Below are positions 9,401-56,515 of a stretch of DNA of 64,000 nucleotides, in pieces (the stretch's first letter is position 1; every line of letters begins with the position of its first letter). The stretch lies in IMG/VR virus record IMGVR_UViG_3300024259_002152, positions 62,001 to 126,000 of that record; one strand, 5' to 3'. A program made the translations under genes and the position numbers. Below the pieces are notes generated by a model that was not told where the DNA came from, searched no databases, and saw only the letters and a program-made list of their open reading frames with translations.

Positions 9401-12400
9401 TGGCTTTGATTTGTCTTATACCGAGATAGTGACTGACGGGATTGCTGATATAACAATTAATGCTACTGGGTTTAGAAATAGCGGAGGAGAGGTAAGTCTA
9501 ACATCGATATTCTCAGAGTTCCCAAATGTTTTGACAGATACTATATCTTCATTGAAAGTAGATGATAATAATAATATTTGGATTTGTACTAATAGTGGTT
9601 TGTATAGGCTTTATAAGAATAAGGCATTATGTTTTACGACTTCTAATGGATTGCCTTCTAATAAAATAAATGATATAGCTGTTAGGAATACAGCGATAAG
9701 ATATATTGCTACTGCTAATGGTATAGCTAAAATGGTAGGATTTAATTTTGATAATTTTATAACATCCGAAGATGAAACTATATGGAATAATAATGTTAAA
9801 AGTATAATGTGGAAAAATCCTAATGTTTTATTAGCTGGTACTATGTCAAGATTGAATCAGATCATTATTAATGATGTTGATGAAACATATTCTACAGCAA
9901 TTTATGAACCTGCATCTTCTATTAATGTGTCTCCAGATGATTTGCAAACATATTATTTAGATAATCCTACAATTGCTGAAGATGACATTGTTGAAGTCTA
10001 TATAAATGGAAATAAAATACATTACGGATATGTTGTTAGTATTGATAAAAAAACGATAAGATTTGGAATGTCTCTTAATAATGATGATATTGTGGAAGTG
10101 GTTGCTAGGAGTGATTTAGAAGTTGTTTCTGATTTTTCCCAGACTATTGCCGAAAGAACAGATATTGGTAGCACTTTATTAAAGATTAAAGATATTGCTG
10201 TTAGGGATAATCAAGATGGAACTGGAGATGTATTTGTTATTTCGGAAGGGTCCGAGAATGAGGTAAAAATAAATGATGCTGATAGTGTTCTACCTTTTGA
10301 TAGAGTTCATCTTGATACTCATGCTCCAATTTTTTTAAACAGTGGTGAGGGAATTAAAATAGGAGAACAAATTGATAGAAGTGTTGTTCGTATTAATATC
10401 GGAGGAGCAACAGATGATGTGTTTGAGACGGAGGGTGATTCTACCACTTCTTTAGTATCAGCAGGATCTGGTATAGATAGTATGATAATATCTAATAATG
10501 AAGAATTTTTAGATAATGACGGTATTACTCCGTTGGTTGCTATTCCATTTTCTAATTCTGCGACTCATGATTTAGGTTTGTCATTAGAAAATATTGTTAA
10601 GAATCTAACTTTGACTAGCGGGGAGGGTTCAGTTATTTCATACATATCAGATGAAAATGAATTATATGTAGGAGTTTCTAAACCAGCTATTGTTTATAAA
10701 TATAATTGGGATACAGAAGTGTGGGATGAGTTGTATACTTACGATACGGACCAATATGTTGATTTTATAGAAAAATATAATAACAATCTTATGATAAGTA
10801 TAGGTCACGATACAGATCCTGCTATTATTTATACTTACACGTATAATAGTGGAACTTTGCAAGCTAATAGTGTTTTACCTTTATTTGAATCTAGAGCTTA
10901 TTCTTCTCATATTCTAGATGGTAAGTTTTATATTGGAACTGGTATAGGATCTGGAGATGAATATACTAGTGGCTCTGGATCAAGTGGAGCCATCTATTTG
11001 TTTGATGATGGAACTACGCAAGCCATAGATCCTTCTTTATCTAAAGTAGTAGATGATCTAGATGAAAATGTTTATGGTTTAACGAGTGCTTTAGGTAGTT
11101 CTAATTTGTTAGCATCAACAGGTCCGAGTGCTTATATCTATGAAGTTGATATAGAAAATCAGGCTTCATTTATTATTTATAACTCTACTGAGGCTATTGT
11201 TTCTCTAAATCATCAGGGAGATATAGGAGAAACTTTTGCTGGATCAGAAACGAGTGGAGTTATTAGAAGATCAATTACTTCTAATAATACTTATGATATA
11301 TCTTTTAGAACAACGCCTGGCAAAGTAAGTGTTTTAAAGATTTTTCCTGTTATTACGGGGATTGAAGGGGCAACGAGTTATTCTTCTACTTTTGCTGCTG
11401 TGGGTAATGTTATTTATTATTTGTCTGATGCTGGGACATGGGTATGGAAATATACCCATAACGAAATTATCAACGATATGACATTTGATAATAGATCTAT
11501 TTCTAATGTATTATATGTAATTTCTGATACTGGTGTTACAAAAATTAATCCTCTAGTTTCAGAAAAAGTTGTATACTTAAAACTGATTGATAGAGCAGGT
11601 AATGCGTCTGTTCTCGATGTTTCTCTTGAATCTGACGGGAGCGTAGATGTAGATAGTAGTAAGTTTGTGGATGGGGTTGCTATAGCAAGTTTGGTTGATT
11701 TTGTAAGTGAAAATATGATTTTTGAGTTAGACGAATTAGGAAATAATCTTTATACTTTAACTGGTGATAGTAGATTTTATTCTGCTGGAAAAATAGAAGA
11801 GGAGAAGGGAGAATATGTTAGTGAAATATTTGATGGTACAAATGATCTTGTTAAATGGGAAACTCTTTCATGGCAAGTAACAGAATTATTTGATACTCAA
11901 GTTTTGATATATGTTAGAACTTCGACATCTTCTAATGATATATTAACAGCAGCATGGCAAGGTCCGTATTCTAGTTTGCAATCTGCTGGAGTCGCTCTGA
12001 GTCATTTGCTTGGTCAATTTATACAATTTAAAGCAGTGTTAATAAGTAATGCAAAGGGTATGTCTCCTACTTTTCATAGGGCAACTATTAGAGCAATTAC
12101 AAGTGAATCGGTTCATTTCTTTACTACTAATTTTGCGATGCCAACAAAACTTAATAAAGGTATTATAACTAGTAAGAAAGTAGTCCCTGTGGCGGCAGAT
12201 GTTGTTTTCGGTCTTAATACAACGAATTCTATTGATTGGACTGAGTATCAGGAGGTTGATGAAAATAGGATATTTAATATTAATCAAACAGGTCATAATT
12301 TAAGAGTAGGGATTAAATTTATAAGTCCTAATCGTTCTACGATAGATACAACAGATTTTGGAGAATATGGTCCATATGATTCTAATTTATATGTTAATAC

Positions 12401-13163
12401 AATAGATTTTGATGTTCTTAATGATACAGGGGTGGTACAGAATTATCATTTTAAGGTTACTTTATTTAGTGATGTTTATCTTAGGGATGAAGTTTTTTCA
12501 GCTTCGTCTTCTGATAGTCCTGACGGATTTAGCGTAAATGGTGTAGCTGTTCCTGAAGGCGGGGTTAGTTTGCTTCATGGAGAGACAGCAGAAGTGTTAT
12601 TTGCTGTTTCTGGAGCGGCTAATATTGATTGCGAAACTTATTATTTTGTAAGGGTAGAATATATATATAACTCTACGTCTTATACTTTGTCTGAAGATAG
12701 ATCATTTGTTGCTAGTTGCACATCTTCATTTATTGATACTATTGATTTTAATTTTACTAATAATGATACAGTATTAAATAACTATCATTTTAGAATAAAA
12801 TTTTATCAAGATTTAGAGAGAACTAATGAATATGCTACAGTTTTTAGCGGAAATGATAGAACTGGATGGATGGTTGATGATGTTTTAATTCCTGAGGATG
12901 GTGCGACCGTGGCATCTGGTCAAACAGTTGGTGTGGTTTATAGACCAGATGCAGATGATTTTTCTTCAGGTTCTATTTATTATATTACAATAGAAGCACA
13001 TGACGGAGATGACTACGTATTCTCTGATAGCTCTTATAGTTTTCAAGTTAGAGATGTTCAAAGCGCAGAGGTGTGTGGAGAATATGCTGATGTTCCTATT
13101 GTGGAGAATTTTGGTCTTATGTTTGAACTAGATAACAACGAATTTATCACTTTGAATATTTAA
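6498..13163 (+). CDS. Giant adhesin/tail-appendage protein: N-terminal LamG, beta-propeller repeats, duplicated C-terminal domain
   Basis: 2221 aa; IAQWKFNG...FSISLWI...WHHIVCTYDG...FDNVCYFNRVLD (LamG); SSLKVDDNNNIWICTNSGLY and GLPSNKINDIAV (propeller blades). Confidence 0.7.
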   Translation: MSLYSNLIAQWKFNGSLLETKGNHPGSWTGGYGNETYSFGVNGDLDSSIDLIGVNDYVRIADDSRLQLSEFSISLWIHPSDLGNGDTLVYYGETTSPSQGDDGWGIYYKSGYIRLTVGDRSNYSSFPEAIVGPMAMWHHIVCTYDGAIGKVYVDSNKGEDGGLTFNGYGNSTFVIGDDGSRLYHTNSLFDNVCYFNRVLDQDEINILYNSGNGIEDLTVFDDSLAIDSAINEYGDEANKGGTWYYTQNKFGSDWVNKVDNSKGWTVDFNLRVENVVDSDWIIDENNKGRGIGLYVNDGTKQETINFLMQQIVFANANHTEIYDTTQEINYRLTGQNNNLKLYARPASDATYKQISDVNFTMDATVNGNSLNPVVFEDTNSNLHVVWWDDGGNLGSIYYSKFNGTTWTNPEEIVSLDNGVQFPSIVVDGEETVYVSFESKQTEGSVIGFVYRNNLGWSEPYYTGVDIGYCKYPQMTLDSLSNPCVVWEDHRRTHQEIYLNIFLADELRWRGEEKVSTNLFGSYRPSISSYMDDLFITWSSVSQDVTSHIEIMRYNVLNSSKLSAVTISRTDSRADHSNVLCNVGGKVFVVWHDNPDGKYKIYSTILSPSLDVLTNEFAIVEGHGGAKYPTLSEQLATGYIYIAWQDYKTGDYNEFGIDLDPSDLDPYGERSVQSLEPSDSAIFVALYNGNYLSSGNGSFDVKMVFDDDRNSYAPAIPIFFNGELPILYESYLFDEYGFLNNNDLLRRVRCAFYSLDRSSAEFLADNVTISDPSSRIFNIHRDYILNENISTKEIRFGDFSDVIDSHYVFKEFKYYIDDAVEPYDIKEIDYSSIGIDSISASDAVINNYGDAWIVGICGAYFYYNHQSRSLEIGRDLPGIEDDIDNEDIASWSNMKAISFDVYNNLFIGGYGSDDKGLIRYSFNHVDGFKDLSITDLPSDVVITSMIFDKDNRLYVGTSSLVDGVSSGLYGFDLSYTEIVTDGIADITINATGFRNSGGEVSLTSIFSEFPNVLTDTISSLKVDDNNNIWICTNSGLYRLYKNKALCFTTSNGLPSNKINDIAVRNTAIRYIATANGIAKMVGFNFDNFITSEDETIWNNNVKSIMWKNPNVLLAGTMSRLNQIIINDVDETYSTAIYEPASSINVSPDDLQTYYLDNPTIAEDDIVEVYINGNKIHYGYVVSIDKKTIRFGMSLNNDDIVEVVARSDLEVVSDFSQTIAERTDIGSTLLKIKDIAVRDNQDGTGDVFVISEGSENEVKINDADSVLPFDRVHLDTHAPIFLNSGEGIKIGEQIDRSVVRINIGGATDDVFETEGDSTTSLVSAGSGIDSMIISNNEEFLDNDGITPLVAIPFSNSATHDLGLSLENIVKNLTLTSGEGSVISYISDENELYVGVSKPAIVYKYNWDTEVWDELYTYDTDQYVDFIEKYNNNLMISIGHDTDPAIIYTYTYNSGTLQANSVLPLFESRAYSSHILDGKFYIGTGIGSGDEYTSGSGSSGAIYLFDDGTTQAIDPSLSKVVDDLDENVYGLTSALGSSNLLASTGPSAYIYEVDIENQASFIIYNSTEAIVSLNHQGDIGETFAGSETSGVIRRSITSNNTYDISFRTTPGKVSVLKIFPVITGIEGATSYSSTFAAVGNVIYYLSDAGTWVWKYTHNEIINDMTFDNRSISNVLYVISDTGVTKINPLVSEKVVYLKLIDRAGNASVLDVSLESDGSVDVDSSKFVDGVAIASLVDFVSENMIFELDELGNNLYTLTGDSRFYSAGKIEEEKGEYVSEIFDGTNDLVKWETLSWQVTELFDTQVLIYVRTSTSSNDILTAAWQGPYSSLQSAGVALSHLLGQFIQFKAVLISNAKGMSPTFHRATIRAITSESVHFFTTNFAMPTKLNKGIITSKKVVPVAADVVFGLNTTNSIDWTEYQEVDENRIFNINQTGHNLRVGIKFISPNRSTIDTTDFGEYGPYDSNLYVNTIDFDVLNDTGVVQNYHFKVTLFSDVYLRDEVFSASSSDSPDGFSVNGVAVPEGGVSLLHGETAEVLFAVSGAANIDCETYYFVRVEYIYNSTSYTLSEDRSFVASCTSSFIDTIDFNFTNNDTVLNNYHFRIKFYQDLERTNEYATVFSGNDRTGWMVDDVLIPEDGATVASGQTVGVVYRPDADDFSSGSIYYITIEAHDGDDYVFSDSSYSFQVRDVQSAEVCGEYADVPIVENFGLMFELDNNEFITLNI

Positions 13164-30505: not shown

Positions 30506-30760
30506 ATGAGGTATAAAATAGGTGATAGAATTAAAATAAGGACCTGGGAAAATATGATGAAAGAGTATGGTTCTTTTCCTGATGGAAAAGAAATTATGCT
30601 TGATAGTCCATTATATTTTGCGTCCGAGGTAGAGGAAGAAATAAATAAAAATTTCCCAGATAGAATTTTAACAGTCTTAAGCGCAGTAAGTGGGTTTTAT
30701 ACAATGGAAAAAACCATTCATGCATTCACTGATGAGATGATAGAGGGATTAGTAGAATAA
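30506..30760 (+). CDS. Small KOW/SH3-like phage protein, paralog of 52684 and 53671, without C-terminal tag
   Basis: MRYKIGDRIKIRTWENM...DRILTV...FTDEMIEGLVE aligns with MKYKVGDKVRIKIWEDM...DRILTI...WTEDMIEGIVE. Confidence 0.7.
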   Translation: MRYKIGDRIKIRTWENMMKEYGSFPDGKEIMLDSPLYFASEVEEEINKNFPDRILTVLSAVSGFYTMEKTIHAFTDEMIEGLVE

Positions 30761-32594: not shown

Positions 32595-32901
32595 ATTAAT
32601 AGGAACTACTGTATTTTATTGGCATGATGCTAAAAAGGAAATGCCAAAGTATGATAGGCCAGTTCTCTTAAAAAGAGAGCCACGTGATAAAGGCAATCCA
32701 ACAAGAGAGAATTTTATTAGTGCATGTCGGAAAATAGATTGGTCCGACGGGCAGGATTATTGGGATTATGTTGGGAAGGTATTTGAAGAATATGAGTTTA
32801 ATGTTGTTGGTTGGGCATATCTGGCAGAAATGGTATCTAATGATATATCAGAGAATAAGACAAGTGAAATAAATGATAGATTTGAGATATTAGATTTATA
32901 G
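32569..32901 (+). CDS. DUF551-like small phage protein with C-terminal RFEILDL tag (start probably ATG 32587)
   Basis: WHDAKKEMP...VVGWAYL pattern; ends INDRFEILDL*. Confidence 0.65.
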   Translation: MIENLDMNKLIGTTVFYWHDAKKEMPKYDRPVLLKREPRDKGNPTRENFISACRKIDWSDGQDYWDYVGKVFEEYEFNVVGWAYLAEMVSNDISENKTSEINDRFEILDL

Positions 32902-44195: not shown

Positions 44196-44422
44196 TGAAT
44201 GCAGAAATAGCAATAGAAAAAGGGTATAAATATTTTTGCTTAAATTGTAATAGACCTTATAAAGAAATTCCTACTCAATGGGAAGAAAAGAATAATTGTT
44301 TAGGCGCAGAGATAGATATGTGTAGTTGTGGTTGTGATTTATTTATGTCTTTTGAAGAGTATTTAAAAAAGCAACAAGACGAAGGTCCAATAGAAAGCAG
44401 AATGGATATTTTGGATTTATAA
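44195..44422 (+). CDS. Small zinc-ribbon protein with C-terminal tag (IESRMDILDL)
   Basis: CLNC...CSCGC; tag at 44399-44422. Confidence 0.7.
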   Translation: MNAEIAIEKGYKYFCLNCNRPYKEIPTQWEEKNNCLGAEIDMCSCGCDLFMSFEEYLKKQQDEGPIESRMDILDL

Positions 44423-46197: not shown

Positions 46198-46412
46198 TGG
46201 AATATAAATGTCAAACAGTTGATATGTCTCGTATGATCGTGGGTTCAATGGGCTTTTTTAGTCCTATTTGTGAAAGTTGTTCTACTCAAGATTGTAGCAA
46301 TCCTATCGAAAAAACAAAAGTTAGTATTATGGGGGTTGTAAAAGAAGTAAAGGTCTATAGTAGAGGTAGTCAATCTAGATTTGTTGTTCAATGTGAAGGA
46401 TATATGCCATAA
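46197..46412 (+). CDS. Small Cys-containing hypothetical protein
   Basis: CESC..DC motif; TAATG coupling. Confidence 0.6.
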   Translation: MEYKCQTVDMSRMIVGSMGFFSPICESCSTQDCSNPIEKTKVSIMGVVKEVKVYSRGSQSRFVVQCEGYMP

Positions 46413-47203
46413 TGTTTAAATCGATTTGTTTGTCAGAAGCTTATTTAAAAGATCATAGACTTCGTAAAGACGCTCAAAAGCAATATGAATTAACTCAGAA
46501 AAATATTCATAAAATCAAGCAAATTGCTCTTAAGATGATATCTTATCCTGAGTACCAATTGGCTTATGATTATGTTGATAATTTATTTCCCAGAGTTAAA
46601 GTAAAAGAAATTTCTATTTATAAGGTTGCAGCAAAAGATTTGGCAAAGATGGGATATTCTGGAGCAGAGGGATTTTATGATCCTGTGTCTAAGATAATTG
46701 TAGCTTGCGGTGCTCGCAAATTATCTCAACCTGTTAATAAGAAATATTATATAACAGCCAAGATAGAGAGAGATGAAGTTATTGTTCATGAATTATGTCA
46801 TTACTGTTATGTCTTTGAGGGGAAAAGATCTCTTAGTAGTGAAATCAGAGAAGAATTTGCTTATGGTTGGTCAGTTGGGTATCTCAGACAAAAAGGTTAT
46901 AGTGATGAGCAAATTGTTAGATATAATTTCTTACCGTATTTGGTGGGGTTGTCGTATGACGAGGCTATAAAAAATATATTAGTGAGAAATAATATAAGCA
47001 CTTATGCATATAATAATCATTCTCGATATCAAAGAAAAGAATTTGAGAGAACATATTTTGGTAGAATTTTTGATAGAGCTAAAGAAATAGCTATGGAGAG
47101 AGGATTGAAGTTGATTGATATTTATTCCAAAAAAATAGAAGAAGGGACAGGGTTAATAGACGAAGAAGTCGATTGTGATCGATTTGATATTTTAGATTTA
47201 TGA
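46412..47203 (+). CDS. HExxH (zincin-like) metallopeptidase with C-terminal tag (DRFDILDL)
   Basis: GAEGFYDP...VIVHELCHY...EEFAY. Confidence 0.7.
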   Translation: MFKSICLSEAYLKDHRLRKDAQKQYELTQKNIHKIKQIALKMISYPEYQLAYDYVDNLFPRVKVKEISIYKVAAKDLAKMGYSGAEGFYDPVSKIIVACGARKLSQPVNKKYYITAKIERDEVIVHELCHYCYVFEGKRSLSSEIREEFAYGWSVGYLRQKGYSDEQIVRYNFLPYLVGLSYDEAIKNILVRNNISTYAYNNHSRYQRKEFERTYFGRIFDRAKEIAMERGLKLIDIYSKKIEEGTGLIDEEVDCDRFDILDL

Positions 47204-47445
47204 AGAAACAAGTTATTGATAAAGATGATAGGATGTGGATAGGACTAGGTTTTAAGTCCTTTGCCCGATTTTTTGGTTTAAGTATCGAAGAAGCTTATAA
47301 AATCATTTCTAATCCTAATGAGGTTTTTGAAGAAATGATAGAAGAAATGGATTCTTCATTAAATGAATATGAAAATTTCATGGTTAAGACAATGAGAATG
47401 GATGAGAAAGAAGAACTGACTCGGCTTGATATTTTAGATTTATAG
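47200..47445 (+). CDS. Hypothetical protein with C-terminal tag (TRLDILDL)
   Basis: 81 aa; ATGA overlap with the upstream tag. Confidence 0.7.
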   Translation: MKKQVIDKDDRMWIGLGFKSFARFFGLSIEEAYKIISNPNEVFEEMIEEMDSSLNEYENFMVKTMRMDEKEELTRLDILDL

Positions 47446-47748: not shown

Positions 47749-48108
47749 ATGAGATTTATACGTAAAGAGTTTATAGTTACTACTATATTTAATAAAGAAT
47801 TAACAGAGAGGGACGAAGTCCTAATCGTTTTTAACAATTTATTAAATGAGAGGATAGAGTTCGCTATGACTATGAAGAAGTATATGCCTATGCAACAAGA
47901 CTATTTCAATATGAGTTTTGAAAAAGTTAGGGTGAAGAGAATCAACGATGATGATACTGTTGATTTGTTAGCTTTCAAGAGTGGGGTTAAAACTAACATA
48001 AAGGGGGTTCCTTTTGATCATATCATAGAAGTAAATGCGACTACTAAAAAACATAAAATTTTAGATATTGACTCCGATTTAAATCGTTTTGATATATTAG
48101 ACTTGTAA
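47749..48108 (+). CDS. Hypothetical protein with C-terminal tag (NRFDILDL)
   Basis: 119 aa. Confidence 0.7.
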   Translation: MRFIRKEFIVTTIFNKELTERDEVLIVFNNLLNERIEFAMTMKKYMPMQQDYFNMSFEKVRVKRINDDDTVDLLAFKSGVKTNIKGVPFDHIIEVNATTKKHKILDIDSDLNRFDILDL

Positions 48109-48815
48109 TGACAGAAGAAGTAAAAAAAGAAGTAAAAGAATTAATAGATCAATATAAATTAGATTGTTCTATTGAAGAGTTTAAAAACAAAGCAAATTGG
48201 GAAAAAATTTCTCATTATGACTTCCTTTCAGAAGATTTTATTAGAGAATTTCAAGATGAAGTACATTGGGAATATCTTTGTTTTTATCAACTATTGCCAG
48301 AAGACTTTATTAGAGAATTTAAAGACGAGGTACATTGGGATAATGTTTTTATATGTCAAAAAATATCAGAGAATTTTATTAGAGAATTTAAGGATAAAGC
48401 AAGTTGGAGAGAAATTTCTTATTATCAAGAATTATCAGAGAATTTTATTAGAGAATTTAAAGATGAAGTAAATTGGAACAATATTTGTCAGAAACAAAAG
48501 TTATCAGAGAATTTTATTAGAGAATTTCAGGATAGGGTAAATTGGCATTGGACTCCCTTTTATCAAACCTTATCAGAAGATTTTATTAGAGAGTTTCAAG
48601 ATAAAGTAGATTGGGTGGCTGTATCTTTTTGTCAAGTATTATCAGAAGATTTTATCAGGGATTTTAGAGACAAGATTTCTTTAGGGTATTTATCGAGTAA
48701 TCAAAAAATAAATGTCTCAGAAGAATTTCGAAAAGGAATAAAAAATGGAAAAATATTACCTCCTCCAATAAAACCATTTTCTTTTGGTAATAGAGTAGAA
48801 ATGTTGGACTTATAA
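48108..48815 (+). CDS. 23-aa tryptophan-repeat protein (7 repeats) with C-terminal tag (NRVEMLDL)
   Basis: W-x6-Q-x-LSE[D/N]FIREF-x-D-x-V-x repeated; tag at 48792-48815. Confidence 0.85.
   Translation: MTEEVKKEVKELIDQYKLDCSIEEFKNKANWEKISHYDFLSEDFIREFQDEVHWEYLCFYQLLPEDFIREFKDEVHWDNVFICQKISENFIREFKDKASWREISYYQELSENFIREFKDEVNWNNICQKQKLSENFIREFQDRVNWHWTPFYQTLSEDFIREFQDKVDWVAVSFCQVLSEDFIRDFRDKISLGYLSSNQKINVSEEFRKGIKNGKILPPPIKPFSFGNRVEMLDL
48198..48680 (+). repeat. Seven imperfect 69-bp tandem repeats (core TCAGA[A/G][G/A]ATTTTATTAGAGAATTT)
   Basis: Visible in DNA and in protein; first Trp codon at 48198. Confidence 0.85.
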
Positions 48816-49162
48816 TGTATAGAGTTGTAGTATTAAAAGAGAAAGATAATAGTTGTTCAGGTTGTTTTGGAAAATCACTTGGATTCTGCTCGAGTTATCA
48901 GTGCCTTACAGGAAATACCTCTTCTGATAGGTCCACTACTGCTTGTATTAATAAAAACAAAGATATTAATAGATATGTCCAGGGTTTTTTGAGATCAAAA
49001 GCACAAGTCCTAAATGACTATAATAGCACAGAAGAAGTTATTAATTCGTTCATAAGATATCTAGAAAATATTGGTAGTACAGATGATGATGCTATTATTG
49101 TAGAAGAAAAGGAAGAAAAAGAAGAAATTATTGAAGACAGATTCGAAATGTTGGATTTGTAA
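48815..49162 (+). CDS. Cys-cluster hypothetical protein with C-terminal tag (IEDRFEMLDL)
   Basis: CSGC...C...C...C; 115 aa. Confidence 0.7.
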   Translation: MYRVVVLKEKDNSCSGCFGKSLGFCSSYQCLTGNTSSDRSTTACINKNKDINRYVQGFLRSKAQVLNDYNSTEEVINSFIRYLENIGSTDDDAIIVEEKEEKEEIIEDRFEMLDL

Positions 49163-49650
49163 TGACAGAAAAAGTAAAAAAAGAAGTAGAAGAAATAATA
49201 AAAGAATATAAATCACAAGTTTCTGTTAGTTATATTCGGGCATTTGAAGATCAGAAATTTGAAAGTCAGGCATTTTGGCAGTCTATTTCTCAATTCCAAA
49301 TTTTATCAGAAGATTTTATTAGAGAATTTCAAGATAAAGTATGGTGGTATGCTATTTCTTGGCATCAAAAATTATTAGAAGATTTTATTAGGGAATTTAA
49401 AGATGAAATAAATTGGTATCAAATTTTTTTACATCAAAAATTATCAGAAGGTTTTATTAGGGAGATTACTGAGAACTTGAAAGACGACAAGAAGTTTTAT
49501 TATGAAGAAAATTTAAGATGTTTACTTAGAAACAAAAATATACCAAATCAAATAAGAAAAGAGATAAATAATTATGGAAAAATATTACCTCCTCGTGGTC
49601 CAATAAAATTATTTTCTTTTAGTGATAGAGCAGAAATGTTGGACTTATGA
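49162..49650 (+). CDS. Tryptophan-repeat protein paralog (3 repeats) with tag (DRAEMLDL)
   Basis: Shares N-terminus MTExVKKEV and C-terminal GKILPP...FSF with 48108. Confidence 0.8.
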   Translation: MTEKVKKEVEEIIKEYKSQVSVSYIRAFEDQKFESQAFWQSISQFQILSEDFIREFQDKVWWYAISWHQKLLEDFIREFKDEINWYQIFLHQKLSEGFIREITENLKDDKKFYYEENLRCLLRNKNIPNQIRKEINNYGKILPPRGPIKLFSFSDRAEMLDL

Positions 49651-50165
49651 CAGAAGAATTAAAAAAAGAAATAGAAGAAATAATAAGAATTGAGAATCTT
49701 AGTTGTTCTGTAGAAGAATTTATTATAGAGGCAAATGATCCTATTTATAGAATTCCCATAGAAGAAGTTCCTTCTATGGAGGGGAAGAAAAGGGTGTGTA
49801 TAAAAACTACTCTGTGGAGTAGAATTTGTCAACATTGTAGTTTATCAGAAGATTTGATGAGAGAATTTATTGAATTACTTCATTGGCCTGGTGTATCTTG
49901 TCATCAAAAATTATCAATAGAATTTGTTAGAGAGTTTAAACACAAAATTCATTGGTATTGGCATACTCATAGAACAGATTTGTCTTATGATTTTATTTTA
50001 GAATTTGAAAAATATTTAGATTGGGAATATTTGATGAAAAAGAAATATTATATATCTGATAATCAAGGTTTTTTTAATGGTGATTTAGATTTTTCTTTAG
50101 AAGAATATAAAAGATTTAAAGAAGAAAATAAAATTCATAGTAGATTTGGTATTTTGGACTTATGA
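49647..50165 (+). CDS. Divergent tryptophan-repeat protein (3 repeats) with tag (SRFGILDL)
   Basis: WSRICQHCSLSEDLMREF, WPGVSCHQKLSIEFVREF, WYWHTHRTDLSYDFILEF. Confidence 0.75.
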   Translation: MTEELKKEIEEIIRIENLSCSVEEFIIEANDPIYRIPIEEVPSMEGKKRVCIKTTLWSRICQHCSLSEDLMREFIELLHWPGVSCHQKLSIEFVREFKHKIHWYWHTHRTDLSYDFILEFEKYLDWEYLMKKKYYISDNQGFFNGDLDFSLEEYKRFKEENKIHSRFGILDL

Positions 50166-50189
50166 AGAAATGGTTGAAGGAAAGAGGTT

Positions 50190-51605
50190 ATGAAATACAA
50201 TAATAAAGATTTTGTTCACTTTCACACACATTCGGAATTTAGTCAGTTTGACGGTTTGGCCAAGGTAGATGATCTTGTTCTTCAAGCTCGAAAGATGGGA
50301 TTTCCATCATTAGCACTTACGGACCATGGATCGGTTATGGGCTGGGTTAAATTTCTCCAGGCAGCAAGAGCTACTAAGGACAAAAAAGGGAAAGATATTC
50401 CTTACGCTCCTATTAAACCTATCCTTGGTTGTGAATTTTATCTGGCTCGAAAAATGAGTATAGGTCAAAATGAGGAGAAAAGAGATACTGATCTTATAAA
50501 AAAATGGCAGCCCGATGGGAGAAGAGGAAATAGACATTTGAATCTCTATGCTATGAATTTTGAAGGATATAAGAATGTATGTCGTATGTCCCAAAGGTCT
50601 TTTACCGAGGGTTTTTATTATGATGCACGTATCGATATTGATTTAATATCAAAACACTCTAAAGGAGTAATGTGTGGTTCAGCATGTCTATCTAGCGTTA
50701 TTAACGCTAATTTAATGTATGGTCGTTACAACCAAGCTAAACAGGTTTGTGGTGTTTTGAATGAGATATTTGATGGTAATTTTTTTCTAGAAATAATGTA
50801 TCATGGGATTAGGGAAGAAAGAGAAATTATTCCTTTAATCTTAAAATTATCATCAGAATTAGATATTCCTGTAGTTGCTACGAATGATTCTCACTACATT
50901 TATAAGGATCAAGGAGAATCTCAAGAAGTCCTATTGTGTATGTCTCAGCAAAGATGTGTTAAAGATCCAAAGAGATTAAAATTTGGTCATATGGAGTTCT
51001 ATCTAAAAAGTGCAGAAGAAATGGGCAGGATGTTTGGGCATATCCCTCATAGTTTGACTAATTCTGTTGCTCTTGCGGAGAGAATTAATACTAAAGATAT
51101 AGAAGATAACCTTTTTGGGGGCATGAGACTGCCAAAGTTCGATATACCTGAAAAGTATAAAAGTCCTTATGATTATTTATCTGATTTAGCATGGCAAGGC
51201 ATGAAAAGAATAGGTTGGGATCAGAGTAAAGAGCATGTTGAAGCACTAAAAAAAGAGTTAGAAGATGTTCTGGTCGCTCAAGAAAATAATAATTATGATT
51301 TCTCAACTTATTTTCTAATTGTTCGTGATTACATTCTTGACGCAAAGGAAAAGGGTGTTTTGGTGGGTTGCGGTAGAGGGAGTGGTTATGCTAGTGTGCT
51401 ATTAAGATGTATTGAAATTACTTATGGAGTTGATCCATTAAAATATGGACTTCTTTGGGAAAGGTTTTTAGGATTTGATTCTAAGAAGTTTATTAAAGAG
51501 TCAGATTTCGGCTTTGAAGAAGATTTGGTGCAGGCGGCGGCAGATAAAGATTTAGGAGGAGATAGAGAGTTAGAAGATGATTTGGGAGGGGTAGATAGAT
51601 ATTAA
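50190..51605 (+). CDS. dnaE: DNA polymerase III alpha, N-terminal fragment (PHP domain to ERFL)
   Basis: FVHFHTHSEFSQFDG, LTDHG, PILGCEFY, ATNDSHY, YFLIVRDYI, VGCGRGS, DPLKYGLLWERFL, then an acidic tail and stop. Confidence 0.93.
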   Translation: MKYNNKDFVHFHTHSEFSQFDGLAKVDDLVLQARKMGFPSLALTDHGSVMGWVKFLQAARATKDKKGKDIPYAPIKPILGCEFYLARKMSIGQNEEKRDTDLIKKWQPDGRRGNRHLNLYAMNFEGYKNVCRMSQRSFTEGFYYDARIDIDLISKHSKGVMCGSACLSSVINANLMYGRYNQAKQVCGVLNEIFDGNFFLEIMYHGIREEREIIPLILKLSSELDIPVVATNDSHYIYKDQGESQEVLLCMSQQRCVKDPKRLKFGHMEFYLKSAEEMGRMFGHIPHSLTNSVALAERINTKDIEDNLFGGMRLPKFDIPEKYKSPYDYLSDLAWQGMKRIGWDQSKEHVEALKKELEDVLVAQENNNYDFSTYFLIVRDYILDAKEKGVLVGCGRGSGYASVLLRCIEITYGVDPLKYGLLWERFLGFDSKKFIKESDFGFEEDLVQAAADKDLGGDRELEDDLGGVDRY

Positions 51606-51619
51606 AGATTGGAAAAATA

Positions 51620-51880
51620 ATGACAGACAAAAAAGAAAAATTTAATATAGGGTGGGGAGACAGACGGGTAGGAGTTATTGGAAAAGATGGAGAAATGATA
51701 GGCAATTTTGTTGTTTTTGACCCCAAAACAAGAATGTTGAAATCTGTTGATGAAAAAGGAGAAGTAGTAAATTTAATTATGGATGCCGATTGTAGGACAT
51801 GGATTCCAGAAGAAATAGAGAAAAAAGAAACAGAAGAGGATATAGGGATAGAGAATCGTTCAGATATTTTGGATATTTGA
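51620..51880 (+). CDS. Hypothetical protein with tag (IENRSDILDI)
   Basis: 86 aa. Confidence 0.7.
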   Translation: MTDKKEKFNIGWGDRRVGVIGKDGEMIGNFVVFDPKTRMLKSVDEKGEVVNLIMDADCRTWIPEEIEKKETEEDIGIENRSDILDI

Positions 51881-51997: not shown

Positions 51998-52153
51998 ATG
52001 ATAGATGATAATAAATGTTTTGTTATAGGGTGTCTTGGTGTTAATGAAGAAGCATATGTAGGAGAATATGTGTTTTTCAGAGATTTTAATCATTGTCTGA
52101 GGTTTAAAAAAATAGAAGCAATTCATGATAGATTTGAGATAATGGACTTATAG
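51998..52153 (+). CDS. Small ORF missed by the track, with tag (MIDDNKCF...IHDRFEIMDL); frame is open back to 51890
   Basis: Hand translation: 51 aa from ATG 51998; no stop between 51890 and TAG 52151-53. Confidence 0.65.
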   Translation: MIDDNKCFVIGCLGVNEEAYVGEYVFFRDFNHCLRFKKIEAIHDRFEIMDL

Positions 52154-52162
52154 GAGAAAAAA

Positions 52163-52687
52163 ATGAAGAGATCGTGTCATATTTGCAAACATGGTGTTAT
52201 AGTTGAATATAAATATGAAGATGATTATGACGAGGACTATATTTTTAAAGGATCGGTTATATTTTGTATTGCAAATCCTCCTCTTTTTGTAGGGGATGAT
52301 GATCATCGTTTTGGGAATGATCTTCAGATCGTAGAAGGAGAAAAGGAGATAAAGGAATATTGTTATTATCCTGTTGTTTATAGAAATGATAATGAGAATA
52401 TAGAAGAAGATGATGAAGATGATGAATATTATGGTAATGGAGAGATAAGTGTTGCTCCTTGTTCTCTTTATTGTGAATCGGCCACTAATAAAACTAAATA
52501 TACGAAGAAATTGGAGAAAATAGAAAAAGAAAAGCAAGAGCAAATAAAAAAAGCAGAAACTAAGAAGAAAGCAGAAGCCAAGAAAAAAGCCGATAAGTTA
52601 CAACGTAAAAAAAATAATAAAAAACGGAAACTAAAAGAGCAAGAAGAAATGAAATTAAAAAACAGATTTGAAATATTGGATATATGA
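52163..52687 (+). CDS. Cys-containing protein with Lys-rich coiled coil and tag (NRFEILDI)
   Basis: CHIC..., KKAE repeats; AGGAG RBS overlaps the preceding stop. Confidence 0.7.
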   Translation: MKRSCHICKHGVIVEYKYEDDYDEDYIFKGSVIFCIANPPLFVGDDDHRFGNDLQIVEGEKEIKEYCYYPVVYRNDNENIEEDDEDDEYYGNGEISVAPCSLYCESATNKTKYTKKLEKIEKEKQEQIKKAETKKKAEAKKKADKLQRKKNNKKRKLKEQEEMKLKNRFEILDI

Positions 52688-53010
52688 AATACAAAGTAGG
52701 AGATAAAGTAAGGATTAAGATATGGGAAGACATGTTAATAGAGTTGTGTAATTATTGGGAGACTCTAGAACAGGCAAGAAACCGTCTTGAGGATCAACAT
52801 ATCTGTCTTGAAAAGGAACTTAACAAGGTAAATGTTGATAGGATTTTGACTATTGAAAGTATAGAAAAACGTGAAGGTTATTATTGTTATCGTACAAAGG
52901 AGAAAGGTTGGGAATGGACTGAGGATATGATAGAAGGGATAGTAGAAGACGTGATAGAGGACCGAATTGAGGATAGAATAGAAAGTAGATTTGAGATATT
53001 GGATATATGA
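52684..53010 (+). CDS. KOW/SH3-like small protein with tag (IEDRIEDRIESRFEILDI)
   Basis: Paralog of 30506 and 53671. Confidence 0.75.
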   Translation: MKYKVGDKVRIKIWEDMLIELCNYWETLEQARNRLEDQHICLEKELNKVNVDRILTIESIEKREGYYCYRTKEKGWEWTEDMIEGIVEDVIEDRIEDRIESRFEILDI

Positions 53011-53402
53011 AATTTATAGAAGTAATAGATTATAATAAGTCATATCCTCAAGGTATTTTTGTAAAAATTCCTATCAAAGATATAAAGAAATTTCATAAGG
53101 TTGAAAAATATACTAGATATTATATAGATTTAGATGATTCAGAACGTTTGTTAAAACGTAAGTATAAAGAACACCTTGGTAATCACATGTTTATCGAGAA
53201 ATCTGAAAATGGTCAATATTATAGTGCTGGGATTATGATTAATCATAAAACACAGATACAATGCCAATCGTCATGTGGTGGTAGTATATATTTTTATTTT
53301 TCAGATTTGGATTATGAAGAATTTGAGGGAGAAGCTCGGTTGTATGATTTGTCGTTACATATTGCCGATATTAATTATAGATTTGAGATATTGGATATAT
53401 AA
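53007..53402 (+). CDS. Hypothetical protein with tag (DINYRFEILDI)
   Basis: 131 aa; ATGA overlap. Confidence 0.7.
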   Translation: MKFIEVIDYNKSYPQGIFVKIPIKDIKKFHKVEKYTRYYIDLDDSERLLKRKYKEHLGNHMFIEKSENGQYYSAGIMINHKTQIQCQSSCGGSIYFYFSDLDYEEFEGEARLYDLSLHIADINYRFEILDI

Positions 53403-53404
53403 AA

Positions 53405-53671
53405 GTGACAGATAAAGAATTTTTACAGATGGTGAGAAATTCATTTGCTCAGGTTCGTAATAAGGGTAATTTGCCTACTGGTCCTGAGCTAATTGAATCA
53501 TTATTATCAGTTCAACCTATGACTGATGAATTAGTTGCAGAGGGATATACTAATGAATTAATAAAATTAGGAAGTTCTAATTTGCAGCGTAAAAAAGTTA
53601 TTATTACAGCATATATGGATATTAATTATAGATTTGAAATATTGGATATACAAAAACAGGAGATAAAGTAA
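53405..53671 (+). CDS. Hypothetical protein; tag extended by QKQEIK
   Basis: GTG start; ...RFEILDI then CAA where sister copies have TAA/TGA/TAG. Confidence 0.65.
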   Translation: MTDKEFLQMVRNSFAQVRNKGNLPTGPELIESLLSVQPMTDELVAEGYTNELIKLGSSNLQRKKVIITAYMDINYRFEILDIQKQEIK

Positions 53672-53940
53672 TGAAATATAAAACAGGAGATAAAGTAAGG
53701 ATAAAGACAAAGGGTCAGATGGAGAAAGAATTTGGCTATTATGACGAAGAAAGCAAATTCATAAATTGTGATCAACATTTTTCTTCTATTATGGAAGAGG
53801 CACTGAATCGGCTAGATAGTGATAGAATTCTTACTATTAATCATTTAGAATATTTTCAAAATGTTAATTATTATTACATGAGGGAAATAGAGGGATTTTG
53901 GACTGATGATATGATAGATGAGTTAGTAAATGATAAATAG
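53671..53940 (+). CDS. KOW/SH3-like small protein; tag lies just downstream in the +1 frame (possible frameshift)
   Basis: MKYKTGDKVRIK...; 53930-53962 reads MINRFEILDI* in the +1 frame. Confidence 0.7.
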   Translation: MKYKTGDKVRIKTKGQMEKEFGYYDEESKFINCDQHFSSIMEEALNRLDSDRILTINHLEYFQNVNYYYMREIEGFWTDDMIDELVNDK

Positions 53941-53971
53941 ATTTGAGATATTGGATATATAGGAATAAAAG

Positions 53972-54505
53972 ATGAGTGAAGTAAGTAAATTATCAGAAGA
54001 AGATCTTAAAAAAATAGCGGATATGATGGTTGATCAGGCAGTAGTGCCGTCTCCTAAAGCAATTATTAAAATAGAAAATGAGACTGTTCCTGAAACTGAT
54101 ACAATTAAAAGATATAAAAGGTCTAATAAACAATTACGGACAAAAGTAGAAAGACAGATTAGCGAAATAGCCAAACAGGAAGCAGAGATAAAAGAGTTGC
54201 AGGTAAGTGCTTATCTTAATACGGATGAGGCTAAAGATACGATCAATAAAAAATTAAGAGAAGAAAAACAAGCATTAAAGCTAAAAATGGAAGAGCAGGG
54301 ATTAAATTTTGAAAAAGAGCGCAAAGAAATAATAGAGACAAGAAGTAAGATTTATGAGTTAGAACGAACAATAGGGAGTAATAAGAAAGAGATTGAGGGG
54401 CTAAGAACAGAAGTGGATCAATTAATGAATGATAATAGAGAACTTCAAGCAGAGATAGATGCTAGAATTAAAGCAGATGGTAGATTTAATATAATGGATT
54501 TATAA
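53972..54505 (+). CDS. Coiled-coil protein with tag (GRFNIMDL)
   Basis: 177 aa, heptad-rich. Confidence 0.75.
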   Translation: MSEVSKLSEEDLKKIADMMVDQAVVPSPKAIIKIENETVPETDTIKRYKRSNKQLRTKVERQISEIAKQEAEIKELQVSAYLNTDEAKDTINKKLREEKQALKLKMEEQGLNFEKERKEIIETRSKIYELERTIGSNKKEIEGLRTEVDQLMNDNRELQAEIDARIKADGRFNIMDL

Positions 54506-54541: not shown

Positions 54542-56515
54542 ATGGCAGATTTAGCAGATATTAAAAAAGAGATAATAGGATATATCACTAAAAAGCACTC
54601 CAAGAGCGATAAATTACCAAAAATTATTTCTAAAGTGAAAGAAGAACTCGATGTTTTAGAATCGACTGACGGTTTAGAAGGCAAGAATAATTTAGAAGTA
54701 TTTTATAATACATGGAAGAGCCACAAGGGAGAGGTGGGTCATAAAAATGACATTAATAGTTGGGCTGCTTTCTTCCTGGGGATAACGGAAGTAAAACCTG
54801 ATGGAGATTTTCTTCCGACTAGGCGTGCTTTTGCTAGGGCGGGATTCCCTGATATTGACACTGATTTTGATTACGAGAATAGGGATACTGTTTATTCTTA
54901 TATAATTGATAAGTATGGAAGAGAGAATGTAGGGAATATTGGCACTCACGGATTATTGAAATTTAAATCATGTGTGACCAGGGTGACTAAAGCTTTAGAT
55001 CTAGCAAATGCTTATCACAAAGGTAGTGATGCTTTTGTTAGCGAAAATGCTGCTAAGGTAACAGAAATTTTATCTCCTTTTCCGAAAATGGGACTAGTGA
55101 AAGTTACTGACGATGATGGTGAAAGTTACCTTATAAAAACTTTCCAAGATGCTTATGATCATTGTCCAGATTTTAGACATTATGTTGACAAATATGAGAG
55201 TAGTCATTTCAAAGAATATATGGAGCATATAGAAGGGACATTTGCTAATTTCGGCTGCCATGCTGCAGGAATAGTTGTTTCTGATATTCCTCTTGATGAA
55301 ATTGCTCCTTTGAGAAATGCTAAAAAGGGAGTTCTTGCCACTCAATTCCCTAATGAAGATTTGGAATCAATAGGTCTTATTAAATTTGATGATCTTGCTC
55401 TTTCTACTTTATCCATTGTGAAAAAAACAGTAAAAATGGTAAAAGAACATTGGGGAATAGAAGTAGATCTAGAAAATCTGCCTATGGAAGATGATGCTAC
55501 TTTCGAATTATATCGTAGAGGAAATTTGGGTGGAGTTTTTCAGTGTGAAAATAGTGGCATGCAAAAAACTATGAGAGATATAGGAGTAGATCGTTTTGAA
55601 GATATTATAGCGGGACTAGCTCTTTATCGTCCTGGACCTATGGATAGTATTCCTGAGTATTGTGCAAGAAAGCATGAAGAAAATGAAATTAGTTACTTTC
55701 ATAGGTCAATTGAGCCATTTGTAAAATCTTATTTAGAAAGCACATATGGAATCTTATGTTATCAAGAGCAAGTTATGCAGATTTGTAATAGTCTTGCAGG
55801 TTTTACTATTACTGATGGCTACATAATGATTAAGTCGATTGGTAAGAAAAAAGAATACTTAATGAAGCGTTTTGAAGAACAATTTATTTTAGGTTGTGAA
55901 AGAAATAAAGTGCCGTCAGATGTTGCTAAGCAATATTGGGATAAATTTATAGTTCCTTTCTCTGGTTATGGGTTTAATTTGGCTCATAGTGCTTGTTATG
56001 GTTATAATTCTTACACTACAGCATATCTAAAAGCTAATTATCCTGATGAATTTATATGTTCTTTATTAGATGTGACGATAAATAGTTCTCAGGGTGAAAG
56101 GTATGATAAAGTTTCAGCATTTGAGAGGGAATTTAAAAGAAAGATGGGTGTTAAATTTCTTCCCAGAGATATAAATAAGTGTAAAGTATCATTTACTATC
56201 GAAAAAAGAAAAGATCTTGCAGAAGGTGTAAAAAAAACAGAAATACGTCCTAGTCTTTTATGTAAAGGGCTTTTAACTAAATCTGCCAAGAACATAGAAG
56301 AAAATCAACCTTATGAAGATATGAGAGATATAGTTAGAAAAACTGATTCTTCGTTAGTTGATACTAGGGTTATAGACGCTTTGGCTACAGGGGGATATTT
56401 AGGTAAAAAGCATATAGAAGACTCTTCTGTTATAGTAAAAGATTTTGTCATGATCAGAGAGGATATGAAAAAAACTGCTAAAAGAGGGGTAGAAACTATT
56501 GATATATTTGGTTAA
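54542..56515 (+). CDS. dnaE: DNA polymerase III alpha, C-terminal fragment (catalytic Asp residues, fingers, HhH)
   Basis: GFPDIDTDF, YIIDKYG, GCHAAGIVVS, GLIKFDDLAL, GVFQCE, LALYRPGPM, TYGILCYQEQVMQI, YGFNLAHS, LKANYP. Confidence 0.93.
   Translation: MADLADIKKEIIGYITKKHSKSDKLPKIISKVKEELDVLESTDGLEGKNNLEVFYNTWKSHKGEVGHKNDINSWAAFFLGITEVKPDGDFLPTRRAFARAGFPDIDTDFDYENRDTVYSYIIDKYGRENVGNIGTHGLLKFKSCVTRVTKALDLANAYHKGSDAFVSENAAKVTEILSPFPKMGLVKVTDDDGESYLIKTFQDAYDHCPDFRHYVDKYESSHFKEYMEHIEGTFANFGCHAAGIVVSDIPLDEIAPLRNAKKGVLATQFPNEDLESIGLIKFDDLALSTLSIVKKTVKMVKEHWGIEVDLENLPMEDDATFELYRRGNLGGVFQCENSGMQKTMRDIGVDRFEDIIAGLALYRPGPMDSIPEYCARKHEENEISYFHRSIEPFVKSYLESTYGILCYQEQVMQICNSLAGFTITDGYIMIKSIGKKKEYLMKRFEEQFILGCERNKVPSDVAKQYWDKFIVPFSGYGFNLAHSACYGYNSYTTAYLKANYPDEFICSLLDVTINSSQGERYDKVSAFEREFKRKMGVKFLPRDINKCKVSFTIEKRKDLAEGVKKTEIRPSLLCKGLLTKSAKNIEENQPYEDMRDIVRKTDSSLVDTRVIDALATGGYLGKKHIEDSSVIVKDFVMIREDMKKTAKRGVETIDIFG

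Follow-up and report, generated by a model that had tools for sequence, protein, structure and literature searches.

Tagged tryptophan-repeat proteins in an accessory cassette of a marine megaphage

The gene block and its 23-residue repeat

The stretch of DNA analysed here (the window, 64,000 nucleotides) comprises bases 62001-126000 of the 350,866-base IMG/VR record IMGVR_UViG_3300024259_002152 (G000), and it contains a block of four tightly packed open reading frames (ORFs) on the plus strand, with overlapping stop and start codons between neighbours, three of which encode paralogous proteins built from a tryptophan (Trp) repeat of 23 amino acids (C, D and E; Table 1). ORFs were translated with genetic code 11 only. 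As the sequencing runs containing this DNA are seawater metagenomes (24 runs listed, none of them recorded as RNA) and a relative of 547,943 bases (G005) is rated 100% complete, the source is taken to be a marine megaphage; CheckV rates the completeness of the record at 73%, which places the full genome near 480 kb. The guanine plus cytosine (GC) content of the window is about 32%, the GC skew is positive along its whole length, and essentially all of the long ORFs lie on the plus strand.

A preliminary description of this DNA had counted 13 repeats, distributed as seven, three and three over three genes, and this count was borne out. Tryptophans are spaced exactly 23 residues apart across seven canonical units in C, three in D and three in E, and phrog_3532, a PHROGs profile of unannotated function, matches each protein far beyond chance. 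At the DNA level, Tandem Repeats Finder reported a 69-nt period at 48228-48670 (6.4 copies, 73% matches) and at 49303-49463 (2.3 copies, 82% matches). Outside of the canonical units, each protein carries an N-cap pseudo-unit and a degenerate last unit.

The preliminary description also held that the paralogues share their caps, and the DNA strings it cited were found where it had placed them. The N-cap is indeed common to all three genes, each of which starts with ATGACAGAA; the C-cap DNA, ATGGAAAAATATTACCTCCTC, occurs at 48745 and 49574, that is, in C and D only. Protein E differs in having an insert of about 30 residues behind the N-cap and a C-terminal region of its own. Between C and D, the N-cap and C-cap/tag DNA is about 88% identical, a closer match than between their repeats. 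Each of the three proteins terminates in the tag R-x-[EG]-[MI]-L-D-L, as had been described, E with the form SRFGILDL. The count of three paralogues holds for the block, inside which an unrelated tagged ORF also lies, with no family match in Pfam or PHROGs profile searches; two further tagged Trp-repeat paralogues reside elsewhere in G000 (10587-11057 and 11937-12521), giving five in two clusters.

The unit consensus reads W1-x-x-[ILV]4-[SC]5-x-[YFH]7-Q8-x-L10-S11-E12-x-F14-I15-R16-E17-F18-x-D20-x-V22-x. Among the 13 units of the window, entropy peaks at positions 2, 3, 6 and 9 (2.8-3.2 bits; 3.2, 3.2 and 2.8 bits at positions 2, 3 and 6), is intermediate at positions 7, 19, 21 and 23, and amounts to 1.8-2.0 bits at positions 4 and 5, where the residues are conservative (I/L/V with one T and one H at 4; S/C/F/T/P at 5). 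A family-wide map was then built from 693 Trp-to-Trp units out of the 120 best homologues, in which entropy is 3.7-3.9 bits at positions 2, 3 and 6 and 0.1-0.8 bits at most scaffold positions, confirming throughout the family a fixed scaffold with a few fast-changing positions. With Ile4 conserved at 89%, Ser5 at 93% and Gln8 at 91%, half of the six residues after the tryptophan that had been called hypervariable belong to the scaffold; the designation stands for positions 2, 3 and 6 and falls for positions 4 and 5. E12, R16 and E17 are conserved at 90-98%. Positions 2, 3 and 6 are also rich in tyrosine (15.3%, against 6.2% in the whole proteins), and 14 of the 39 residues at these positions in the window units are aromatic. 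Unit numbers range from 2 to 7 in the paralogues of this phage and from 3 to 8 in the 120 homologues.

Two shadow ORFs (48172-48471, 99 aa; 49244-49378, 44 aa) run in another frame of the arrays and are periodic themselves; they are by-products of the repeated DNA and not genes.

Table 1. Genes, protein segments and tag sites at the locus (window positions unless residues or another record are named)
Feature	Position	Strand	Evidence
Trp-repeat paralogue C, 235 aa	48108..48815	+	ORF; Trp register; phrog_3532 E=1.6e-65; AlphaFold2 model; BFVD matches to entomopoxvirus and phage G members
C: N-cap helix and pseudo-unit	residues 1-30	+	Trp register
C: seven canonical 23-aa units	residues 31-191 (48198-48680)	+	Trp register
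C: degenerate C-cap unit	residues 192-214	+	Trp register
C: Pro-rich disordered linker and tag	residues 215-235	+	AlphaFold2 pLDDT <50 at residues 214-235
C: C-terminal tag SFGNRVEMLDL, variant of the clade-wide 11-mer	48780..48812	+	Sequence
Unrelated tagged ORF, 115 aa, Cys-rich N-terminus	48815..49162	+	ORF; start and stop codons overlap those of neighbours
Trp-repeat paralogue D, 162 aa	49162..49650	+	ORF; phrog_3532 E=5.1e-20; Trp register
D: three canonical units	residues 39-107 (49276-49482)	+	Trp register
Trp-repeat paralogue E, 172 aa, most divergent	49647..50165	+	ORF; phrog_3532 E=1.3e-15; Trp register
E: three canonical units	residues 57-125 (49815-50021)	+	Trp register
Accessory cassette (C, 115-aa ORF, D, E)	48116..50199		blastn breakpoints, synteny, composition
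Conserved tagged gene, 119 aa, left border of cassette	47749..48108	+	Synteny, blastn
N-terminal piece of split DNA polymerase III alpha, right border of cassette	50190..51605	+	ORF, synteny, blastn
Tag sites	32878-32901, 44399-44422, 47180-47203, 47422-47445, 48085-48108		Sequence pattern
Tag sites	48792-48815, 49139-49162, 49627-49650, 50142-50165, 51857-51880		Sequence pattern
Tag sites	52130-52153, 52664-52687, 52987-53010, 53379-53402, 54482-54505		Sequence pattern
Members of the MKYKVGDKVRIK family	30506-30760, 52684-53010, 53671-53940; G000 137797-138096, 254365-254682; L002 12200-12520		

Family membership and predicted fold

C, D, E and the two further paralogues are members of the viral "tryptophan repeat gene family", a name that dates from the first entomopoxvirus genomes. 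A sequence search returned 2297 homologues at E<=1e-3. Among phage records, tblastn matched 26 places in Bacillus phage G, 35 in Listeria phage LPJP1 and 33 in Bacillus phage BpSp, where gp123-127 are annotated "tryptophan repeat gene family protein" (E=4e-31), and translations from these three phages show the same 23-aa unit in tandem paralogue arrays with 2 to 14 units (counted as motif matches). A structural search of BFVD with the model of C described below matched AMV029 of Amsacta moorei entomopoxvirus (E=4e-19, 43% identity) and MSV027, "tryptophan repeat gene family protein" (E=2.8e-18, 40% identity, template modelling (TM) score 0.75, root-mean-square deviation (rmsd) 2.0), as well as MSV205, a family-named MySEV protein, other entomopoxvirus proteins and phage G gp558-563. 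The entomopoxvirus matches span 33-43% identity and E=1e-15 to 1e-19 overall. Neighbours in the ESM Atlas are nearly all viral (Nucleocytoviricota and Uroviricota), and clusters sharing this fold in the Atlas contain fusions to an F-box, DarT or DUF7666 domain, the F-box occurring in giant-virus relatives. AMV254 has likewise been reported to combine Trp repeats with an F-box (PMC7728225).

The window proteins share with the entomopoxvirus and jumbo phage members (MSV027, MSV205, AMV029; BpSp gp123-127, G gp556-563, LPJP1) the unit itself, the invariant tryptophan and the core L-S-E-x-F-I-x-x-F, at 37-43% identity to the entomopoxvirus proteins (TM 0.70-0.75), and with the jumbo phages the arrangement in tandem paralogue arrays with differing unit numbers. 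Unlike the named family, they continue past the C-cap with a linker rich in proline and an 11-residue tag specific to the clade, their host is a marine bacterium, and they number five, compared with about 26-35 tblastn matches in each of G, BpSp and LPJP1. The closest sequence relatives, at 50-60% identity, are bacterial and metagenomic Trp-repeat proteins with DUF7666 (PF24703), which have the same form of N-cap (MKKSVKKEI...LNCSVEEF) and place the repeat module N-terminal to another element. Of the 120 best homologues, 103 end in a DUF7666-type domain, whereas the window proteins lack it, and no credible DUF7666 was found in the megaphage clade, the only match in G000 being sub-threshold and interrupted by stop codons. 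No credible match to C, D or E was obtained from Pfam (the F-box included), NCBIfam or PADLOC, and searches of the literature and the PDB returned no structure, partner or function for the family. It is thus an already named and functionally uncharacterised family, of which the window proteins are ordinary members, and it counts among the large multigene families of DNA viruses with big genomes, namely entomopoxviruses, giant viruses and jumbo phages.

In order to model the fold, AlphaFold2 was run on C with a 45-sequence alignment. The model (mean predicted local distance difference test (pLDDT) score 89.5, predicted TM score 0.78) consists of nine helix pairs, with helix A covering unit positions 1-7 and helix B positions 12-17. 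With high confidence, C is predicted to fold as an alpha-solenoid of two short helices per unit with a disordered tail bearing the tag, in agreement with the solenoid proposed in the preliminary description. In such a model, the units would stack between a conserved N-terminal helix and the degenerate C-terminal unit as caps. The conservation pattern suggests that W1, I4, S5, L10, F14, I15, F18 and V22 would supply a hydrophobic core, F14, I15 and F18 coming from helix B, and that E12, R16 and E17 would form a conserved charged side of helix B. By helix periodicity, W1, I4, S5 and Q8 should occupy one side of helix A and positions 2, 3 and 6 the opposite, outward side, where they would align unit by unit into one ridge on the outer helix-A layer. 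A sequence profile search of the PDB returned only spurious matches to engineered OspA.

Two further comparisons concern other repeat proteins. Like the Trp repeat, the LRV repeat (PDB 1LRV; Pfam LRV, LRV_2) is a short two-helix repeat, of 24 residues, that forms a solenoid; the score of 1lrv_A (Z 5.3, with an rmsd of 5.2 across 169 residues) is one of the highest in the structural comparison, is equalled by PPR, DARPin and HEAT chains and falls within the range of generic solenoids, and PF25591 LRV_2 is present in 17% of the members of one related Atlas cluster. The Trp repeat differs from LRV in consensus and in repeat length, and apart from noise it has no Pfam match at E<=1. The poxvirus ankyrin/F-box (PRANC) proteins, DARPins and armadillo proteins follow a similar logic of a conserved scaffold with a few variable surface positions per unit, and PRANC-type proteins also form multigene families in large viruses and are fused to an adaptor element, as Trp-repeat relatives are to the F-box. 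They differ in their unrelated sequence, in repeat geometry and in that C, D and E have no F-box, and binding by the Trp repeat would be an analogy with these proteins.

The C-terminal tag and the accessory cassette

The pattern R-[FLMVAS]-[DEGN]-[IM]-[LM]-D-[LI] is found at the end of 15 ORFs in the window; G000 as a whole has 37 such ORFs and G005 has 44, with up to 15 tagged small ORFs per 10 kb in the latter, and a wider consensus can be written as the 11-mer [ED]-P-I-x-[NSD]-R-F-[ED]-I-L-D-L. Its codons vary synonymously (Arg AGA/CGA/CGG/CGT; Leu TTA/TTG; Asp GAT/GAC), which indicates a constraint on the peptide and not on the DNA. The tag is carried by about 40 unrelated proteins per genome, a diverse set of small size with a median of 86 aa in G005. 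Besides the five Trp-repeat proteins, they include a 371-aa protein built from eight repeats of DUF4116 (Pfam E=2.5e-51; G000 136685-137800, L065:5685-6797), a second repeat family with the tag, and a 263-aa protein (window 46412-47203) that contains HELCH, an HExxH motif, and weakly matches SprT-like proteins (E=0.12); it is kept in the relatives L002, L003 and L006 and may be a metalloprotease. Among the 120 closest Trp-repeat homologues, the tag occurs in one; set against the DUF7666-type end of 103, this marks it as a clade-specific addition to the family. In the window proteins, it is placed downstream of the family's own C-cap helix and linker. Derivation from the C-terminus of the Trp family, as the similar BpSp tails LFKLKEL might have indicated, was rejected, LPJP1 and G showing that these tails are an amphipathic C-cap helix.

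Neither "RFEILDL" nor the tag motif was found in the literature searched, and the marine megaphage paper PMC9723777 does not contain the words 'motif', 'repeat' or 'C-terminal'. As an analogy from general knowledge, encapsulin cargo-loading peptides and the ClpX-binding tail of SspB are also conserved terminal peptides that follow a flexible linker on unrelated proteins, although the tag has no sequence similarity to either. The tag is the more unusual feature of the locus, compared with the Trp-repeat proteins themselves.

Several minor observations concern the tag. More distant relatives carry a few acidic residues after the motif. A six-residue extension follows the tag in two proteins (QKQEIK in window 53429-53671; DKKEIK in L031 of G005), which suggests that the sequence just past the usual tag stop codon is also conserved. 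The ORF at 53671-53940 ends at TAG, with a perfect tag (NRFEILDI and stop) in another frame at 53929-53962; removing one A from the run GATAAATAGA would bring the two into a single frame, and the break may reflect misassembly, decay of the tag or a site of frameshifting. This ORF belongs to a second paralogue family of about 85-110 aa starting with MKYKVGDKVRIK, of which some copies are tagged and others untagged (Table 1).

The block itself was delimited by comparison with L002, the nearest relative, which has a DnaE fragment of 83% identity. By blastn, the two sequences match through the tagged 119-aa gene as far as window position 48115 and again from 50200, at the start of dnaE; between these breakpoints, L002 has 540 nt with two other ORFs instead of the four genes. 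This gap identifies the block as an accessory cassette. Positions 48001-50000, at 27.7% GC, are the most AT-rich 2 kb of the window, the surroundings being at about 32-33%. G001 and the complete G005 have one Trp-repeat copy each and G002 has two and one stop-broken copy, so that the five copies of G000 are a lineage-specific expansion, small beside those of the jumbo phages of Gram-positive hosts. The broken copy of G002 (L007, G002:C1:47742-51212, 1495-1749 onward) has one TAG stop after 84 codons.

To the right of the cassette, the DNA polymerase III alpha subunit is split, the upstream gene encoding the N-terminal piece and the downstream gene (54542-56515) the alpha NTPase, finger and HHH domains (Pfam E=1e-30 to 1e-48). 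The two genes are separated by eight small tagged ORFs. Relatives have the same dnaE split with one to four different tagged ORFs in it, marking the gap as a hotspot of cassette turnover.

Evolution of the repeats and possible functions

Selection was assessed between units with the ratio of nonsynonymous to synonymous differences per site (pN/pS, Nei-Gojobori). At scaffold codons the ratio is 0.28-0.5, which is purifying selection and establishes that the repeats are real coding sequence. The preliminary description had also expected repeat number to change by recombination. Unit number does differ among paralogues and homologues; the best-matching pair of units reaches 80% DNA identity at most, so no unit has been duplicated recently, and no recent gain or loss is seen. 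A tagged three-unit orthologue is present in G001, G002 and G005. Between the orthologues of G001 and G005, none of nine residues at positions 2, 3 and 6 is identical, compared with 37 of 60 at other repeat sites (p=5e-4), and these positions are thus the fastest sites between orthologues as well, on thin evidence.

Variation within populations was checked with contigs from four other seawater samples (non-source runs, Logan) over 5.3 kb (5,301 letters). These contigs are identical where placed, with 4 single-nucleotide polymorphisms (SNPs) in 5.3 kb and none at variable repeat codons. The copy-number variation among metagenomic samples that had been anticipated did not appear: no clean unit-number variant was seen in contigs that are short, of low depth and broken at the repeats, for which reason this population evidence is weak. 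Contig joints considered as repeat-number variants were explained by paralogous N-caps or masked repeats, or had sides no longer than 47 letters, in most cases below 36.

On balance, these data are probably best explained by Trp-repeat solenoids acting as protein-binding modules with a fast-evolving, Tyr-rich ridge, carried in a tagged accessory cassette. The solenoids would bind host or phage proteins as adaptors or inhibitors, with the ridge of positions 2, 3 and 6 setting their specificity, and the predicted disordered, Pro-rich linker connects each solenoid to the clade-wide 11-mer, by which the roughly 40 small tagged proteins, the Trp-repeat ones among them, might dock to one common partner. 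The fusion of the repeat module to F-box, DarT or DUF7666 in relatives adds some weight to the adaptor idea.

A binder function is plausible; a number of findings weigh against this explanation. Foldseek with the model found nothing in the PDB at E<=1e-3, hence no related solved structure, and the best solved chains by VIA-align are generic solenoids (Z<=5.7). The exposure of positions 2, 3 and 6 is predicted from helix periodicity. At the variable codons, pN/pS between units is 1.1-1.4 with pN and pS both near saturation, so that the positive selection expected in the preliminary description is neither shown nor excluded, and fast change at exposed sites would also be expected under relaxed constraint. 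The orthologues of G002 and G005 show no excess change at positions 2, 3 and 6 (4/9 identical, compared with 27/60 elsewhere). Finally, the phage genomes lack the candidate receptors for the tag that were looked for, namely ClpP and S41 protease (in G000, G001 and the complete G005; Lon and FtsH were not searched for), beta-clamp and DUF7666.

Three observations are what would be expected if the solenoids were real and positions 2, 3 and 6 merely unconstrained, the proteins acting through the conserved side of helix B or serving as spacers or scaffolds: the variable-site ratio is not clearly above 1 and is saturated, one orthologue pair lacks excess change, and the conserved E12, R16 and E17 could be the functional surface. 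This neutral surface is the main rival, and we regard it as somewhat unlikely, since the variable sites are enriched in tyrosine, relatives are fused to F-box and DarT as would be expected for a target-recognition module, and large paralogue arrays occur in many big viruses.

A more specific form of the binding-module explanation, which we hold to be unlikely as it stands, makes the Trp-repeat solenoids substrate adaptors and the 11-mer the phage counterpart of the F-box, plugging binders and effectors into a common machine (a protease, the capsid interior or another hub). Were this true, the phage would possess an 'address label' system for about 40 interchangeable accessory proteins, among them several repeat binders (Trp repeat, DUF4116).

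The preliminary description had instead proposed that the proteins, possibly anti-defence or host-protein binders, are delivered through the tag. In such a scheme, the tag would be a signal for virion packaging or delivery, and the Trp-repeat proteins would enter the capsid and be injected along with the DNA to act against defence or on host proteins. A short peptide at the C-terminus, set behind a disordered linker and present on some 40 unrelated accessory proteins of small size, would suit this role, and the layout resembles, by analogy, that of the peptides that load cargo into encapsulins by binding their HK97-fold shell. However, the tagged genes of the window lie in small-ORF arrays among replication genes, even inside the split dnaE, and no large ORF in the first half of the window is tagged; the capsid-targeting sequence of T4 is N-terminal and cleaved, and the acidic extensions of more distant relatives show that the motif is not strictly terminal. 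We consider delivery quite improbable. Equally improbable in our estimate is a degron or tether, in which the tag would link its carriers to a protease or hub, with the Trp-repeat proteins bringing targets or the tag limiting the lifetime of early proteins. The F-box fusions in giant-virus relatives and AMV254 would fit such a role, as would a terminal, hydrophobic and acidic motif behind a flexible linker, similar from general knowledge to known tethering peptides, and the presence of the DUF4116 and HExxH/weakly SprT-like proteins in the tagged set. The absence of ClpP and S41 protease speaks against it, and the G000 record contains no transfer-messenger RNA whose tag could be compared.

Programmed hypervariation, in which a diversity-generating retroelement or ongoing recombination would rewrite the variable positions or the repeat number, agrees only with the general pattern of a fixed scaffold and variable positions and is close to excluded: no RVT_1 match to a reverse transcriptase was found in the 351-kb record (73% complete), there is no near-identical template among units of 80% DNA identity or less, and the four-sample contigs match without a SNP at a variable codon.

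With the binding-module explanation preferred, what is added here to the family is a confident fold prediction, a family-wide map showing only three hypervariable positions per unit together with the side of the helix on which they are expected, evidence for accessory cargo expanded in one lineage, and a link to a clade-wide C-terminal tag. Fold and variability map make the binder hypothesis directly testable, and no new kind of system is implied.

Elsewhere in the window, positions 6498-27275 hold three very large ORFs (2221, 1967 and 2075 aa) with neighbours of 650-1050 aa, all untagged, which may be tail or fibre proteins. Further along the record, 31 tRNA genes form a 10-kb array (G000 327905-338016).

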